A stretch of DNA of 24,893 bases from the sequence record NC_043427.1, one strand, 5' to 3'. Below are positions 1 through 24,893 of the stretch, piece after piece. Both the position numbers and the translations under genes were made by a program. A model generated the notes under the pieces. The model saw nothing but the letters and a program-made list of their open reading frames with translations, was not told the origin of the DNA and searched no databases. How positions within the stretch are numbered: position 1 is the stretch's first letter; every line of letters begins with the position of its first letter.

Positions 1-72
1 TTGGGGGGACTGGGGCTCCCATTCGTTGCCTTTATAAATCCTTGCAAGCCAATTAACAGGTTGGTGAGGGGC

Positions 73-174
73 TTGGGTGAAAAGGTGCTTAAGACTCCGT
101 GTAAGCAAAAGCCAGAGCTGTGTAAAAATGAGGAGAAAGTCAAGATATTGCCCGCTGGGGGTGAGGAAAAGTGA
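73..174 (+). CDS. Small hypothetical protein (33 aa, MGEKVLKTPCKQKPELCKNEEKVKILPAGGEEK)
   Basis: TTG start after GGTGAGGGG; its TGA stop overlaps the GTG of the next ORF (GTGA coupling). Below the ORF-track cutoff. Confidence 0.35.
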   Translation: MGEKVLKTPCKQKPELCKNEEKVKILPAGGEEK

Positions 175-9752: not shown

Positions 9753-10047
9753 GTCTGCTCTAGAGGTTGCAGCTCCTGCTGCTGCTAGGGCTGCTCGGGG
9801 GGCTGCCGAGTTTGTTGCAGCAGAGGAGTTCCCAAGGCTAGTGAGGAACATTATACTAGTGAGCATGATGGGAGCAATGGGCTATATGATACTGAGAACG
9901 TTCCAGGGGGTATCCCCGGCTGTAAGCGAGTCTATAGAGCAGCTTCAGCCTGTAATAGCTACAACAATAGCTGTCGTTGTTCCTATGATGGTAATAGTCT
10001 TCGTGCTTGCAGTGATTAGAGCTATTGTTAGGATAATTGCGGGGTGA
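9739..10047 (+). CDS. Two-helix hydrophobic hairpin protein (coat-like)
   Basis: Two hydrophobic helices linked by RTFQGV, a motif shared with the next ORF. Confidence 0.7.
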   Translation: MARLESALEVAAPAAARAARGAAEFVAAEEFPRLVRNIILVSMMGAMGYMILRTFQGVSPAVSESIEQLQPVIATTIAVVVPMMVIVFVLAVIRAIVRIIAG

Positions 10048-12142: not shown

Positions 12143-12198
12143 GAACATGGGGGACCCCTATAAGGTGATGGATGACGAGAAGACTATAGGAGGCTACT

Positions 12199-12409
12199 TT
12201 GTCAGCGGAAGCAATGTACTATGCAGACATGATAGTAAAGCGTTCAAGCTTCATAGCGATTCTAGCGGAGAAGGCTGGACGCCCCCATTGACACGATGAT
12301 TCGGGAGATAAGGGCAGTAGAGATGCTCGGGAAAGCGATAGCGACGGCAGCAGCAAACGCTGCAAAGAGGCTTGAGGAGCTGAAGCAGGTAAGGGAGGCG
12401 GAAGGGTGA
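12199..12409 (+). CDS. Small helical protein(s) with ambiguous reading frame
   Basis: Either TTG 12199 (GGAGG RBS) joined by a +1 shift at C5 12282-12286 to the frame ending at 12409, or two coupled ORFs 12147-12299 and 12296-12409. Confidence 0.4.
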
Positions 12410-14125: not shown

Positions 14126-14181
14126 GGTTTTGGCACATACAGACTAAGTAGTAAGGTTTATTACCCCCCGTGCCAAAACTG
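14125..14181. repeat. Inverted repeat flanking the recombinase promoter
   Basis: GTTTTGGCAC 14127-14136 and GTGCCAAAAC 14170-14179 with a 33-nt spacer that contains the TATA-like AAGGTTTATTA. Confidence 0.85.
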
Positions 14182-14201: not shown

Positions 14202-15413
14202 ATGCCCAGGCCCTCTATCCAGAATGTCCTCGATTTAAGGCGGGATGAGGTCCTTGAGCTCCTTGGTCGAGGCATCCCAGCGGAGGATGTAGCGAAGAAA
14301 TTCGGGGTATCAAGGAGGACGCTATACCGCTGGCTAGAGCGTCAAGGCCTCACTGTTCAGAAAATCAGGGAGGAGTACCAGAAGCTGAAGGAGGAGCGTG
14401 AAAGGCGGAAGAGGGAGAGGCTAGCAGCTATTGGTGAGATACCGGAGGACTTCGAGAAGTTTGTTGAAATCGAGGAGGTAAGAAAGTTCCTTGACTGGCT
14501 CAAAGCAAGGAGGGTAACAACAGCAGTAGACATCGTGAGAACCCTACACAGGGTATGCCTAGACCTTGGTATCCACCCGATGCTACTGCTTGAGGATGAG
14601 GGGAAGGAGAAGCTGACGAGCCTCCTAGCCAAGTACAATGAAATGTATAAGAAGTGGACTGTGGAGAGCATTAAGGCCAATCTCAGGCTGTGGTACAAGT
14701 TCAACGAGAAGATGCCCCCCGCTATATTGAGCCTCGAAGCCTACAAGTCCAACATGGCTCACCTAGCGTGGTTCAACGTTAGCGATAGAGCCGTAATCCT
14801 TGAGACAGCCTTCCGCTTACTCGACAAGGAGCAGTTTGACAAGGTTAGAGCAGCTTTATTGTTCCTATTCTATACTGGGTCGAGGGCTGAAGCCCTGACT
14901 AACGTGAGGTTTGAGGCTCGTGAGGTTCAAGTTGATGGTAAGAGGATTACAGCGATAATAGCAATCACGAGGGAGAAGGGTAGGCACGGGAAAAAGCAGT
15001 GGGAGAAGCCTCTCCATCCAGTCATCTATGAAAAGTACATCAAGGGCAGGCTGCCATTCTCCCAGGCGGAGCTCAAGTGGTTGAGGAGGGTCCTCAAAGC
15101 GATATACAGAGAAGCTCTGAAGGGGCAGGAGAGCAGCGTGAAATATGAGTATGCTATGAAACACGTCATTCATATCTGGAGACACACGGCAGCAATGAGC
15201 ATGTTGCATGCGACGGACTGGAACGTTGGACTTGTTGCTGAGATTCTTGGGTGGGAGAGCCCCGATATTCTCCTCAAAATTTACGGCAGGATGCCTCCAG
15301 AGTGGAAGATTGCCCAGGCGTTGGGTGTAACTGTCGAGAGGCCTCCGTTCAGGTTTGTTTACGGGAATGAAGAAGAGAGGCTCAAGGAGCTTAGAATTCT
15401 GGAGCTCCCTTAA
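14202..15413 (+). CDS. Tyrosine recombinase with N-terminal HTH
   Basis: HTH (AEDVAKKFGVSRRTLYRWL); catalytic R (YTGSR), K (REKG), HxxR (HIWRH), W (LGWES, Cre-like) and Y (LKIYG). Confidence 0.92.
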   Translation: MPRPSIQNVLDLRRDEVLELLGRGIPAEDVAKKFGVSRRTLYRWLERQGLTVQKIREEYQKLKEERERRKRERLAAIGEIPEDFEKFVEIEEVRKFLDWLKARRVTTAVDIVRTLHRVCLDLGIHPMLLLEDEGKEKLTSLLAKYNEMYKKWTVESIKANLRLWYKFNEKMPPAILSLEAYKSNMAHLAWFNVSDRAVILETAFRLLDKEQFDKVRAALLFLFYTGSRAEALTNVRFEAREVQVDGKRITAIIAITREKGRHGKKQWEKPLHPVIYEKYIKGRLPFSQAELKWLRRVLKAIYREALKGQESSVKYEYAMKHVIHIWRHTAAMSMLHATDWNVGLVAEILGWESPDILLKIYGRMPPEWKIAQALGVTVERPPFRFVYGNEEERLKELRILELP

Positions 15414-17440: not shown

Positions 17441-18613
17441 GTGAGAGGCGTGAGAGTTCTGATAACAGGTGTAACTGGGTTCAAGGGCTCTTATCTTGCG
17501 AAGAGGCTCGTTGAGGAGGGATGGAGGGTTTTCGGGCTGGTCAGGGGGAGAAGCGATAACCACAGATTCGTAAGGCTTAGACTACTGGGGATTCTCGATA
17601 ACGTGGAGCTTGTTGATGGGGACATGACAGACCCTGTGAGCTTGCAGAGAGCGATAGCTAAGACCCAGCCGGACGTGATATTTCACCTTGCGGCTCAATC
17701 TTTCGTTGGAAGGAGTTTCGAGGCTCCGCTGGAAACATTTAACATTAACGCTTACGGGACGGTAGCCCTACTTGAGGCTGCAAGAGCTCATGTACCAGAC
17801 TCTAAGATAATCGTTGCAGGTAGCAGTGAGGAGTATGGTAAACAGTTCATATCGGAGATGCAGTGGGAGAGGAGCGGGAAGCCGGGTCCAGAGCCTAAAA
17901 GGCTCCCCGAGCTCCCGATTCGTGAAGACAACCCGCTTAGACCTGTTAGCCCATATGCTTTGAGTAAGGTTGTTGAGGACTTTGCTTGCCAGGCCTATGC
18001 TAGGATGTATAACATGGATTGTACAGTTCTCAGGGTCTTCAATACTGAGGGCCCTCTCAGGGGAGAGGTCTTCGTTACGGCATCAATAGTGAAGCAGCTT
18101 GTAGCAGTCAAGAACGGCTTGAGAAAATATGTCGAGCTAGGCAACGTTGCAGCTATGAGGGACTGGTCTCATATCGAGGACACCATTGAGGCTTATTATA
18201 ACGCTACAAAGGTGAGAGGAGGCGTTTACAACGTTGGTAGCGGGAGGATTAACAGTGTGCTCTACTTCCTTGTTAGAGCGTTTAACGCTGTGTTTAATGA
18301 TGAGGCAGAACTCGTTAGGATAGAGGATAGGAACGTTATTACACTGTTCCCAGAGGAGGTTGACGAGATGATTTTGAGTTACATGAAGGAAGGTGTTGAA
18401 CCATTCAAGCCAGGCATGAGGATATCTGTGATAGGCAAGAGACATAGTGTTGATGTGGTTCTTAGCAGAGAGAGGTTCAGGCCTGCTGACGTTCCTCTGC
18501 TACAAGCTGACTATTCAAGGTTTGCACAAGCTACTGGATGGAAGCCTATGAGGAGCCTAGACGACATCATAGAGGACCTTGTAAGCTTCTATACTGGAAG
18601 GTGGAAGCCTTGA
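17441..18613 (+). CDS. gmd: GDP-mannose 4,6-dehydratase-like extended SDR
   Basis: TGVTGFKGSYLA Rossmann loop, HLAAQSFV, SSEEYG, YALSK (YxxxK), FNTEGPLRGEVFVT and LGNVAAMRDW; substrate is inferred from motif resemblance. Confidence 0.75.
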   Translation: MRGVRVLITGVTGFKGSYLAKRLVEEGWRVFGLVRGRSDNHRFVRLRLLGILDNVELVDGDMTDPVSLQRAIAKTQPDVIFHLAAQSFVGRSFEAPLETFNINAYGTVALLEAARAHVPDSKIIVAGSSEEYGKQFISEMQWERSGKPGPEPKRLPELPIREDNPLRPVSPYALSKVVEDFACQAYARMYNMDCTVLRVFNTEGPLRGEVFVTASIVKQLVAVKNGLRKYVELGNVAAMRDWSHIEDTIEAYYNATKVRGGVYNVGSGRINSVLYFLVRAFNAVFNDEAELVRIEDRNVITLFPEEVDEMILSYMKEGVEPFKPGMRISVIGKRHSVDVVLSRERFRPADVPLLQADYSRFAQATGWKPMRSLDDIIEDLVSFYTGRWKP

Positions 18614-22120: not shown

Positions 22121-22456
22121 ATGGTTAAGGTCTATGCCATTGACAGGGATGGAACTCTTGAGACTGGAGAGCCTCCAGGTCCTCTCAAGATATGCCAAGT
22201 CCTCAAGCTCCTCAAGCAAGGACACATCCTCTACTCCTATGGAAATTACAAGCTGATTGAGGAGCTGCCCATTCCCTATGCCCCAGGGAGGGACAAATGG
22301 CAGAGGCTCAAGTGGATAATGGAGAGGCATCCTGATGCAGAGGAGTACATCTATATTGATGATGTGGACCAAAAGATGCCTGGATGGAAGTGGCTTAAAC
22401 CCGAGGAGGCAGCAAGGATGATAGGACCGTGCCCCCATGAGGAGAGGGCCCTATGA
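22121..22456 (+). CDS. Minimal capless HAD-superfamily phosphatase
   Basis: Motif I AIDRDGTL, motif II LYSYG, motif III Lys (DKWQRL), motif IV YIDD. Confidence 0.75.
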   Translation: MVKVYAIDRDGTLETGEPPGPLKICQVLKLLKQGHILYSYGNYKLIEELPIPYAPGRDKWQRLKWIMERHPDAEEYIYIDDVDQKMPGWKWLKPEEAARMIGPCPHEERAL

Positions 22457-22690
22457 GGAGCGGGGAGCAATGACTGGGGAGCCCCACCTGAGGGGTGTGT
22501 GCCAAAACCTCTCCTATAATAAAAATCTCTCCTTAGTAGGCTCGGGAAATGAGAAGAATAACCCCCCGGGATTGGGAGGCCCAAAGGAGAAACCATCAAA
22601 GGGGAAATGGCACACAGGACCATAATTCCAACTCTACATAGTCTAGGGAGTATCCTTAACTGAAGGCCTCTTCCTCATTGTTTAGAGGGG

Positions 22691-22718
22691 GTTTTGGCAC
22701 AGACACAAGTGCCAAAAC
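22691..22718. repeat. Perfect 10-bp inverted repeat with 8-nt spacer (recombinase core-site-like)
   Basis: GTTTTGGCAC-AGACACAA-GTGCCAAAAC; the same arm occurs at 14127, 14170 and 22499. Confidence 0.9.
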
Positions 22719-22759
22719 TGTGCCAGCATCATTGTCCATATGAAAAGGTCATCAGATAA

Positions 22760-22839
22760 TGGGGGTCCCAATCCGCTTGCTTATGGTATCCCAGCCATGA
22801 GGCTCATGGTATCCCAACTTCATCAGTCATGGTATCCCA
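22760..22839 (+). repeat. Iteron-like direct repeats with 23-bp period
   Basis: ATGGTATCCCA at 22783, 22806 and 22829; a degenerate copy ending TCCCA at 22770 is in register. Confidence 0.9.
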
Positions 22840-22860
22840 CATTATCATTACTATGTTTCA

Positions 22861-22905
22861 AAGCCCTCTTTCAAACATCATGAATCATTGATGTGAATAG
22901 GGCTT
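22861..22905. repeat. Imperfect hairpin
   Basis: AAGCCCT/AGGGCTT, TTC/GAA and ACATCA/TGATGT stems around an 8-nt loop. Confidence 0.7.
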
Positions 22906-23034
22906 CGGCCTGTGCCAATTTGCAAGTTTTGAGTTAATAGGCATAAGAGTTTAGCTTATAGATGGTACAGAAGAGTTGTGTCTTTAAGCCAATCACCTTA
23001 CCAATTAAGGTATGTTTCCCAGCATACTCTAGCC

Positions 23035-24136: not shown

Positions 24137-24398
24137 AGAGCTAAAACAGAGAATTATGAAGGTCTTGCAGAACGGGAGCAAGACTCTTGTCGAGGTTCAT
24201 TTTTTAGTTGAGAAGACTGGCTTCGTTGTTTCTTACAGGCGTCTCAAGCTGGTTGTTGACGAGATGGTTCAATCTGGGCTTATAGAAAAAATGAGGGACG
24301 GAAAAAAGGTAAAGTATAAGATAAAAGAAGGGCAGCATAAGATATGGCTCGAATACCCCTGGAGAGGTGAGGAAGAGTGGGCAAGTATGCGACTCTAA
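24093..24398 (+). CDS. Winged-helix DNA-binding protein
   Basis: RIMKVLQNGSKTLVEV...LKLVVDEMVQSGLIEKMRDGKKVKYKI. Confidence 0.8.
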   Translation: MGLKLEPAVTAASDEELKQRIMKVLQNGSKTLVEVHFLVEKTGFVVSYRRLKLVVDEMVQSGLIEKMRDGKKVKYKIKEGQHKIWLEYPWRGEEEWASMRL

Positions 24399-24577
24399 CA
24401 CAGGACCTTCCCGAGGAGTACAGGAAGGCTCACCCCATATGTGTGGCTAGTAAAGTGGCCAAAATGGGCTACGAGCCTGCAAGGGCTCCTAGGGACGTGA
24501 GGCAGAGAGCAGCCGAGGAGTGTATAAGGGAGGGCAAGCTGCACGGCATAGTGAAGCTGCTAAGCCCCTCGGTTTGA
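24377..24577 (+). CDS. Stand-alone His/Cys domain protein (paralog of the 3741 N-terminus)
   Basis: DLPEEYRKAHPICVASKVAKMGYE...RAAEECIREGKLHGIV; GAGGTGAGG RBS. Confidence 0.8.
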   Translation: MGKYATLTQDLPEEYRKAHPICVASKVAKMGYEPARAPRDVRQRAAEECIREGKLHGIVKLLSPSV

Positions 24578-24582
24578 AGGCC

Positions 24583-24804
24583 CTAGAACCTATACCTCCT
24601 AATTATTTTTTCAATGTCGCTTACACTGAACTTCTTCTTCTTGTTTGACATCAAATACTGAATTTGAAGGAATCTCAGTACTCTTACAACCTTTCCAATT
24701 GGATGCTTTAAGAGGATATCTGTCATCTTGTCTGCATCATCCTCTCCCAACCCTAGCTCGATGAGAGTCCTTCTTATCATATCTCTGAATTCTTTCCGCT
24801 CCAC
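24583..24804 (-). CDS. Only credible reverse-strand gene; helical, basic protein (73 aa)
   Basis: AGGTAGGTGA RBS on the minus strand; local purine skew is inverted; convergent with 24377-24577. Confidence 0.8.
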   Translation of the reverse strand: MERKEFRDMIRRTLIELGLGEDDADKMTDILLKHPIGKVVRVLRFLQIQYLMSNKKKKFSVSDIEKIIRRYRF

Positions 24805-24850
24805 ATTATCACCTACCTGTAAAGTTGTTGGCTACTGCTAATTTGGGTTT

Positions 24851-24893
24851 CCCAGTCTCTCCCAGTCTCCCCCATTAATTCATATTCACCTAA
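24851..24893. repeat. Left arm and loop of the junction-spanning stem-loop, plus a CCCAGTCTC tandem repeat
   Basis: 24861-24877 pairs with 24891-24893 plus 1-14 when the window is circularised; CCCAGTCTC at 24851 and 24861. Confidence 0.8.

Follow-up and report, generated by a model that had tools for sequence, protein, structure and literature searches.

A putative operator-like array of short repeats with hairpin potential at the genome junction of Aeropyrum coil-shaped virus

Operator sites of archaeal-virus regulators are exemplified by those of SSV1 F55 at the T5, T6 and Tind promoters and by those of SIRV1 SvtR. Here we describe an element of similar make-up in Aeropyrum coil-shaped virus (ACV). 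The stretch of DNA analysed (the window) is the complete circular (+) single-stranded DNA (ssDNA) genome of this virus (24,893 nt, HE681887.1/NC_043427.1). The element consists of a stem-loop, whose arms lie on either side of the point where the last base of the record joins the first, and of further copies of the short repeats from which these arms are built. As at the SSV1 and SIRV1 operators, the repeats are found beside TATA boxes in a hyperthermophilic crenarchaeal virus, genes for ribbon-helix-helix (RHH) and winged helix-turn-helix (wHTH) proteins are near, and a lone divergent small gene adjoins the main promoter. Different from those operators, the ACV array is located upstream of both TATA boxes rather than over a TATA box or transcription start, its binder is a candidate only, and the virion genome is ssDNA, so that the site also exists as a hairpin. 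With the geminivirus/CRESS common region the locus shares a circular ssDNA genome, divergent genes, direct and inverted repeats, a TATA box, a GC stem and an AT-rich loop. In ACV, however, the nonanucleotide NANTATTAC is lacking, a Pfam scan of 20 of the 57 proteins detected no HUH Rep, the stem itself is made of the repeats instead of being flanked by them, and the genome is about ten times larger. By these comparisons the element seems to resemble crenarchaeal-virus promoter operators functionally and the promoter/origin regions of small ssDNA viruses architecturally. It does not belong to the CRESS origins, the archaeal origin recognition boxes (ORBs) or the recombinase sites, whose defining features it does not show.

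ACV (Alphaspiravirus yamagawaense, Spiraviridae) infects Aeropyrum pernix. Its ssDNA genome is far above the size usual for ssDNA viruses and is without a recognisable replication protein. The profile of the ICTV, the international committee on virus taxonomy, lists a single species in the Spiraviridae and describes a virion with circular positive-sense ssDNA folded into two antiparallel halves, no recognisable polymerase or rolling-circle Rep, a replication that is probably host-dependent and a host growth optimum of 90-95 °C. The window was 100% identical to the deposited record over the 6 kb compared. This record is annotated as circular, with 56 genes on the plus strand and one, ORF57-73, on the minus strand. 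Coordinate 1 is the TTG of annotated ORF1-57, the first possible start after the TAA stop at the end of the record, which makes ORF1-57 a maximal ORF. The hairpin is split at the window ends because the depositors' numbering begins at this start codon, and the split is thus an artefact of numbering. A previous interpretation made without database searches (the sequence-only reading) had taken the stem-loop as support for circularity. It adds little in this respect, since the break reflects only the choice of coordinate 1. The contiguity of the two ends itself was borne out, by the circular annotation and, independently, by a metagenomic relative (see below) that passes uninterrupted through the equivalent point. 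The same reading had placed the element correctly between the lone minus-strand gene and the first plus-strand genes. Neither an earlier description of the junction element nor one of any other ACV cis element was found in the searchable literature, a search that did not extend to the original PNAS 2012 paper on ACV.

Arms, loop, coordinates and pair counts of the stem-loop were exactly those that the sequence-only reading had given. Over 17 nt the arms form 15 Watson-Crick pairs, one G-T pair and one C-T mismatch, and they enclose a loop of 13 nt (Table 1). A perfect tandem of two copies of TCCCAGTCTC at 24850-24869 runs into the left arm and offers a second pairing register. Among the ungapped inverted repeats of the genome whose loop does not exceed 30 nt, the junction repeat ranked first; an equal or better one was present in 14.5% of 200 dinucleotide-shuffled genomes. 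DNA folding of 83 nt at the junction gave −15.1 kcal/mol with z = −3.0, and 2 of 200 shuffles were as good. When a 60-nt window was slid over the whole genome, the junction came about fourth by folding energy (−12.9 kcal/mol). The top two 60-nt folds by stability, at 17860-17919 and 9772-9831, are both intragenic, and the fold at 22660-22719 ties with the junction. From the ACV sequence alone, the repeat exceeds chance weakly. Rfam gave zero matches in the window or in the relative.

The case for a real element comes from conservation in this relative rather than from statistics on ACV only. The relative, here called L004, is an ENA metagenome scaffold of 7,226 nt (ERZ23495249, scaffold_12983). 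It was reached via ORF3-208, whose single homologue in a set of 5.8 billion proteins is encoded on it. Collinearity between L004 and ACV extends from ORF55/56, by way of the minus-strand ORF57, the intergenic region, ORF1, ORF2 and ORF3, to approximately ORF19. The amino-acid identities are 72% for ORF2, 53% for ORF3 and 45% for ORF57, and L004 appears to be a fragment of a second spiravirus-like genome. From the outermost repeat, unit A, to the TATA box, 56 of 76 positions are identical in ACV and L004 (74%), compared to 38% and 31% in the flanking non-coding DNA and to the 45% of the ORF57 protein. The homologous hairpin folds in L004 with z = −2.65, around the loop ATCTGATATTGAGTT in a spacer of 15 nt. 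In an RNAalifold analysis of the two sequences, the 17 pairs comprised 14 identical pairs, one with a one-sided change and two with compensatory double changes, and none was broken; the alternative register gave 13 invariant pairs and one compensatory change, covariation from only two sequences having no statistical power. With 13 or 14 of the 17 pairs invariant on both sides, depending on the register, it is the sequence that has been kept and not pairing alone. As judged from this alignment, dyad symmetry and the sequence itself are both constrained.

One could suppose that the repeat has no cis function at all and arose either by chance or as a by-product of coding, be it for the N-terminus of annotated ORF1 or for a small GGLGLP peptide. 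The frequency of equally good inverted repeats in the shuffled genomes would be in line with the former. Pure chance is however contradicted by an island of 74% identity between flanks of 31-38%, and also by the cluster of repeat cores in L004 described below. Together with the evidence on coding (see below), this renders the absence of a cis function very improbable.

A hexamer core, CCCAGT or CCCATT, is the building block of the arms. Six such cores are present in ACV, in the order three direct (A, B and C), two inverted (C' and B') and one direct (D). In L004, five units (B, C, C', B' and D) match CCCAGT/ACTGGG perfectly, at 548, 557, 578, 588 and 597. No other 6-mer of the contig is clustered as strongly as these five copies in 55 nt, and a cluster of this kind was reached in 0 of 100 shuffles. 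Measured from centre to centre, the cores are spaced by 10, 10, 22, 9 and 9 nt in ACV and by 9, 21, 10 and 9 nt in L004, which corresponds to one or two turns of B-DNA in both genomes (helical phasing). Since unit A in ACV and unit D in both genomes lie outside the hairpin, base pairing cannot account for them. In L004, B' and D form a perfect 7-1-7 palindrome, ACTGGGA-c-TCCCAGT, whose 1-nt spacer is far below the size of a hairpin loop but suits a dimer on duplex DNA. An identical G-to-T variant of the core is found in C, C' and D of ACV. As it includes D, outside the hairpin, this variant represents a site-class pattern and not an effect of pairing.

The array is framed by two predicted core promoters. 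In all 24.9 kb, the plus strand matches TTTAWAWA a single time, at the TATA box TTTATAAA, and L004 has its counterpart, TTTAAAAG, in the same relative position (610-617). The distance from the TATA box to the revised ORF1 start (see below) is 42 nt in ACV and 50 nt in L004; further TATA-like hexamers of ACV lie 37-49 nt upstream of start codons. The single match to TTTAWAWA suggests that one dominant canonical promoter serves the plus-strand gene set. In archaeal promoters the TATA box is centred around −26 with respect to the transcription start, and from this general geometry plus-strand transcription would be predicted to start near position 61. On the opposite side, the putative TATA-like element of the ORF57 promoter coincides with TAAT(T/C)T, which is conserved in the otherwise 38%-identical stretch and is found in L004 at 529-534, 37-42 nt upstream of ORF57. 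The array starts about 6 nt after this TAAT element and ends 7 nt before the TATA box of the plus strand, and it fills the approximately 80 nt between the two divergent promoters, both of which are predicted from sequence.

The annotation of ORF1 places part of the array inside a gene. Both the hairpin arm and the TATA box overlap with codons 1-24 of annotated ORF1-57, which are not conserved as coding sequence. The L004 counterpart of ORF1 starts with an ATG that aligns with TTG73 of ACV, and an in-frame TAG stop is located three codons upstream of this start (648-650). The protein encoded from TTG73 has a conserved TPC-x6-C...VKILP motif. Annotated ORF1-57 is thus probably over-extended and the true ORF1 is probably about 33 codons long, a correction of the start that came out of the junction analysis. 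With ORF1 starting around position 73, the right arm of the hairpin is very probably non-coding. For a coding origin of the conserved sequence it can be argued that ACV codons 2-11 and an ORF at 571-633 of L004 both give GGLGLP.., with two of the differences being synonymous. The L004 frame ends after 20 codons, however; it is out of the ORF1 frame, and a stop falls three codons before the ORF1 start. Moreover, the putative peptide ORF includes the TATA box.

We consider an operator-like array of protein-binding sites that controls divergent promoters as the best reading of this element, and we hold it with moderate confidence. It is favoured because the repeats are phased (six cores in ACV, five perfect ones in L004), copies are present beyond the hairpin, the array lies between two TATA-like elements, and its sequence is conserved above that of the neighbouring non-coding DNA, as seen with one relative. 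The array would act as an operator in the duplex form that the genome takes inside the cell. Its sites, aligned on one face of the helix, would there be occupied cooperatively by a DNA-binding protein that is dimeric or oligomeric, and the bound protein would set the balance between the ORF57 promoter and the plus-strand promoter. The stem-loop would then be the dyad-symmetric core of the six-site array, and the packaged plus strand would have its 17-bp hairpin potential because the binding sites stand inverted. By folding, the hairpin may also present this protein with B and C in duplex form, which the proposed mechanism does not require. The binder is probably viral, with ORF53 (RHH), ORF54 and ORF55 (wHTH) and ORF57 itself as candidates.

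Several observations weigh against an operator. The binder is known only in the form of these candidates, and ORF57 has no recognisable DNA-binding fold, its match to HTH_Cbp1 being non-significant. Both promoters are deduced from sequence and from what is generally known about promoters in archaea. Instead of covering the TATA boxes, the array lies upstream of them, an arrangement more typical of archaeal activators than of repressors. The dyad symmetry, kept with two compensatory changes and no broken pair, is equally predicted by a functional ssDNA hairpin, and as the packaged genome is single-stranded, such a hairpin can form. Finally, the covariation counts come from a two-sequence alignment, too few for statistical power, and the melting temperatures given below are a rough extrapolation.

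Table 1. Positions of the junction element, its repeat units and the flanking genes and predicted signals in the ACV genome (strand, or orientation for the repeat units)
Feature	Position	Strand/orientation	Remarks
Left arm, CCCAGTCTCCCCCATTA	24861-24877	+	holds core units B and C
Loop/spacer, ATTCATATTCACC, AT-rich, 13 nt	24878-24890	+	central ATATT common to ACV and L004
Right arm, TAATTGGGGGGACTGGG	24891-24893 plus 1-14	+	
Right arm, first 3 nt, TAA	24891-24893	+	stop codon before position 1
Right arm, remainder, TTGGGGGGACTGGG	1-14	+	with inverted units C' and B'; GGACTGGG invariant in L004
Unit A, CCCAGT	24851-24856	direct	outside hairpin; degenerate in L004 (CCTATC)
Unit B, CCCAGT	24861-24866	direct	conserved in L004
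Unit C, CCCATT	24871-24876	direct	in left arm
Unit C', AATTGGG	24892-5	inverted	in right arm
Unit B', ACTGGG	9-14	inverted	in right arm
Unit D, CCCATT	18-23	direct	outside hairpin, 9 nt from B'
TATA box, TTTATAAA	31-38	+	putative promoter of ORF1 and the plus-strand gene set
Putative TATA-like element of ORF57 promoter, AAATTA	24839-24844	-	35-40 nt upstream of start codon
Shine-Dalgarno-like GGTGAT	24808-24813	-	3 nt upstream of ORF57 GTG start; TATCACC invariant in ACV and L004
Shine-Dalgarno-like GGTGAGG	63-69	+	upstream of revised ORF1 start; L004 AGGTGGTG at 648-655
ORF1, revised (probable), 33 codons from TTG73, (M)GEKVLKTPCKQKPELCKNEEKVKILPAGGEEK	73-174	+	matches L004 gene 660-773, MGEEKKFETPC...
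ORF57-73, sole minus-strand gene	24583-24804	-	predicted four-helix protein

The hairpin could alternatively be an ssDNA-specific cis signal, recognised in the packaged or incoming plus strand either where synthesis of the complementary strand is primed or as a signal for packaging or turning at one end of the folded circular nucleoprotein; this is possible, yet less probable than an operator. Analogues are the minus-strand origins of Ff, G4 and phiX174 and the Ff packaging signal. The Ff (M13/fd) elements resemble the ACV stem-loop as imperfect hairpins of the packaged strand in a folded-back circular ssDNA within an elongated virion. They are longer, however (about 30-78 nt), are not composed of repeated cores and do not lie between divergent promoters, whereas the ACV hairpin is known from its folding potential. 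A signal of this kind would agree with the antiparallel folding of the circular (+)ssDNA genome, with the rank of the junction repeat as the best ungapped inverted repeat, and with a pairing that is fully kept in L004, including the two compensatory changes. Furthermore, no replication protein has been identified in ACV, so that host enzymes must locate the start site. In one of the registers, three non-Watson-Crick positions are G-T pairs of the plus strand, the others being, for ACV, the C-T mismatch and, for L004, a bulged A; this G-T bias could as well be explained by C-to-T deamination on the G-rich packaged strand. An ssDNA signal leaves unexplained the additional cores beyond the hairpin and their helical phasing, and the sequence is conserved far past the needs of pairing. 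Folds of equal or higher stability are present at the three other positions mentioned above, and the large non-coding region around 22.7 kb, with a perfect hairpin and iterons, looks more origin-like than the junction. Both roles could coexist in one element, as they do in the geminivirus common region.

Temperature is a further point against a purely single-stranded signal. For the naked hairpin, melting temperatures of 73-79 °C (ACV) and about 84 °C (L004) were estimated, below the growth optimum of the host, by a rough extrapolation from 25-70 °C with parameters for 1 M NaCl, without proteins or polyamines. A hairpin that is stable in vivo would therefore itself require protein. Structures computed at 90 °C with the ViennaRNA DNA parameters were physically meaningless and were discarded. 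If the hairpin marked one fold-back of the nucleoprotein, the other would be expected near 12143-12295. This 153-nt non-coding gap is located about 220 nt from the point opposite the hairpin loop (around 12,438); it shows no conspicuous structure, and its coincidence with the opposite point is not significant.

The sequence-only reading had also considered a nicking or origin site, and here its own reservations were justified: the loop does not match NANTATTAC, and a CRESS/HUH rolling-circle origin with Rep nicking in the loop is very improbable. Such an origin would be in keeping with a stem-loop between divergent genes in a circular ssDNA genome and with the ATATT of the loop. Yet ANTATTAC matches the genome seven times and not once at the junction. 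The would-be nick motif differs between ACV (CATATTCAC) and L004 (GATATTGAG), and its 3' 'AC' is not conserved. The 20 proteins scanned contained no HUH/Rep domain, and no Rep homologue is reported in the ICTV profile. With neither a NANTATTAC-like nonanucleotide at the junction nor a Rep among the proteins scanned, this origin was rejected and is largely refuted. Of the functional options put forward in that reading, the nicking site is not supported, and the operator of divergent promoters fits best.

A viral duplex origin that mimics the ORBs of the host and recruits the Aeropyrum Orc1/Cdc6 is the least probable of the explanations considered. Like the archaeal ORBs, the ACV element has inverted repeats with G-runs around an AT-rich centre. 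The four ORBs of A. pernix Ori1 share TCCAnnGGAAA followed by GGGGT (PMC8287685), and a weight matrix built from these four scored, out of 15.1, at most 3.3 at the junction of ACV and 7.9 in L004. The G-string is wrongly oriented relative to the core, and with 13 nt (ACV) and 15 nt (L004) instead of tens of bp, the AT-rich centre is too short for an unwinding element. ORB mimicry was rejected because both the core and an unwinding region are missing.

Tyrosine recombinases that act on folded ssDNA hairpins exist. A tyrosine-recombinase core site has inverted arms of 11-13 bp around a spacer of 6-8 bp, and folded sites have a stem of at least about 25 bp with two boxes. The junction could be a recombination site of this type at which the ACV recombinase, ORF33-403, acts, be it on a duplex core or on folded ssDNA comparable to integron attC or CTX-phi attP(+), and the annotated enzyme, called a tyrosine recombinase by the ICTV, speaks for this. 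We nevertheless judge it very unlikely, if not to the same degree as a CRESS origin or an ORB. The spacer of 13-15 nt is too long, and the 17-bp stem is too short for two boxes and a central region; on this geometry neither the core nor the folded site is supported. A tRNA-like sequence was not found in ACV, and the left-arm pattern, the one pattern scanned, was unmatched in Aeropyrum or related genomes. In ORF33-403 (14202-15413) only an N-terminal helix-turn-helix of resolvase/transposase type was detected (HTH_7, E = 1.6e-8); a catalytic domain was not recognised in sequence searches of Pfam, NCBIfam and the PDB.

A better candidate for a recombinase site is the 10-mer GTTTTGGCAC, which occurs in five exact copies (14127-14136, 14170-14179, 22499-22508, 22691-22700 and 22709-22718), close to the promoter region of the recombinase gene and in or near the large non-coding region. 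The first two copies form an inverted pair with a 33-nt spacer in the 76-nt gap immediately upstream of ORF33. The copies of GTTTTGGCAC may be sites of the recombinase or of a regulator.

The large non-coding region (22626-22961) is the largest of ACV, and two of the genome's top five 60-nt folds by stability lie in it. A perfect 10-bp hairpin, GTTTTGGCAC-8 nt-GTGCCAAAAC, is present at 22691-22718 and an imperfect one at 22861-22905. Between them, three 15-nt direct repeats GCTyATGGTATCCCA start at 22779, 22802 and 22825, with an exact spacing of 23 nt, and are flanked by an 11-nt inverted repeat, GATAATGGGGG/CCCACATTATC. The pentamer TCCCA recurs at 22766, 22789, 22812 and 22835. The GC skew, examined as an origin marker, was positive throughout ACV without any switch and hence uninformative. 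ORF52 had no homologue by which the relative's counterpart of this region could be reached.

This combination of sites recalls iteron plasmids such as pPS10, R6K, P1 and F, in which iterons 22-23 bp apart at the origin are accompanied by an inverted half-iteron operator at the rep promoter. ACV likewise has an inverted array at a promoter and three direct repeats spaced by 23 nt (22779-22839), with the pentamer TCCCA in common. The sharing of TCCCA is weak evidence, however, and different from the plasmids ACV has no identified Rep-like initiator. As a tentative and rather unlikely proposal, the CCCAGT hairpin may be a plus-strand duplex handle for a spiravirus protein that marks the start of the complementary strand, the fold-back at the virion tip or both, the same protein also binding the 23-nt TCCCA iterons. 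Were this the case, the junction array would be the operator and the 22.7-kb region the origin of a new Rep-independent replication system, in the ssDNA virus with the largest genome known. Taken together, the junction array and the iteron/hairpin region narrow down where an origin may lie.

Returning to the operator-like array, the proteins encoded next to it were inspected for possible binders. ORF53 contains an RHH domain (Pfam RHH_1, E = 2e-4), and ORF54 and ORF55 are annotated as wHTH proteins. The AlphaFold model of ORF57 has a mean confidence (pLDDT) of 92.5. Fold searches with this model gave no significant match: the top PDB entry was PDCD5 with E = 0.7, and BFVD returned only the ACV protein itself. 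Among 1.8 billion representatives, the ORF57 family comprised the L004 homologue and two 78-aa proteins of 27-32% identity. None of the members is assigned to a Pfam family, and the HTH_Cbp1 match was obtained for one of four members, with a non-significant E value of 0.033. A scan for sigma-70 promoters and intrinsic terminators yielded no terminator, by a method that is not applicable to archaea.

Apart from L004, searches of IMG/VR, the JGI metagenomes, the GTDB genomes and the protein databases yielded no relative whose sequence crosses the junction. Scans of IMG/VR with ORF3, ORF57 and an ORF2 alignment recovered only ACV itself, scans with P0008 and P0009 gave no matches, and an ORF2 profile recovered only ACV and L004 among 5.8 billion proteins. 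Protein scans of the JGI metagenomes and of the GTDB genomes were without matches. At the DNA level, a pattern scan of the JGI metagenomes gave two chance-like matches, and the left-arm pattern gave five chance matches in the GTDB genomes, all in unrelated taxa and none in Aeropyrum or its relatives. With L004, the family has at least one further member, and comparative analysis becomes possible. The conserved array provides an experimental handle, as it defines a short DNA probe for the cognate protein as well as two predicted promoters and start sites. In the stretch compared, the DNA identity between ACV and L004 was highest, with 87-93%, at the start and end of ORF56-66 (24360-24400 and 24522-24566). 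The top 6-mer cluster of the ACV genome is CTCAAG/CTTGAG, with four copies within 60 nt (22157-22216) inside ORF49-111.

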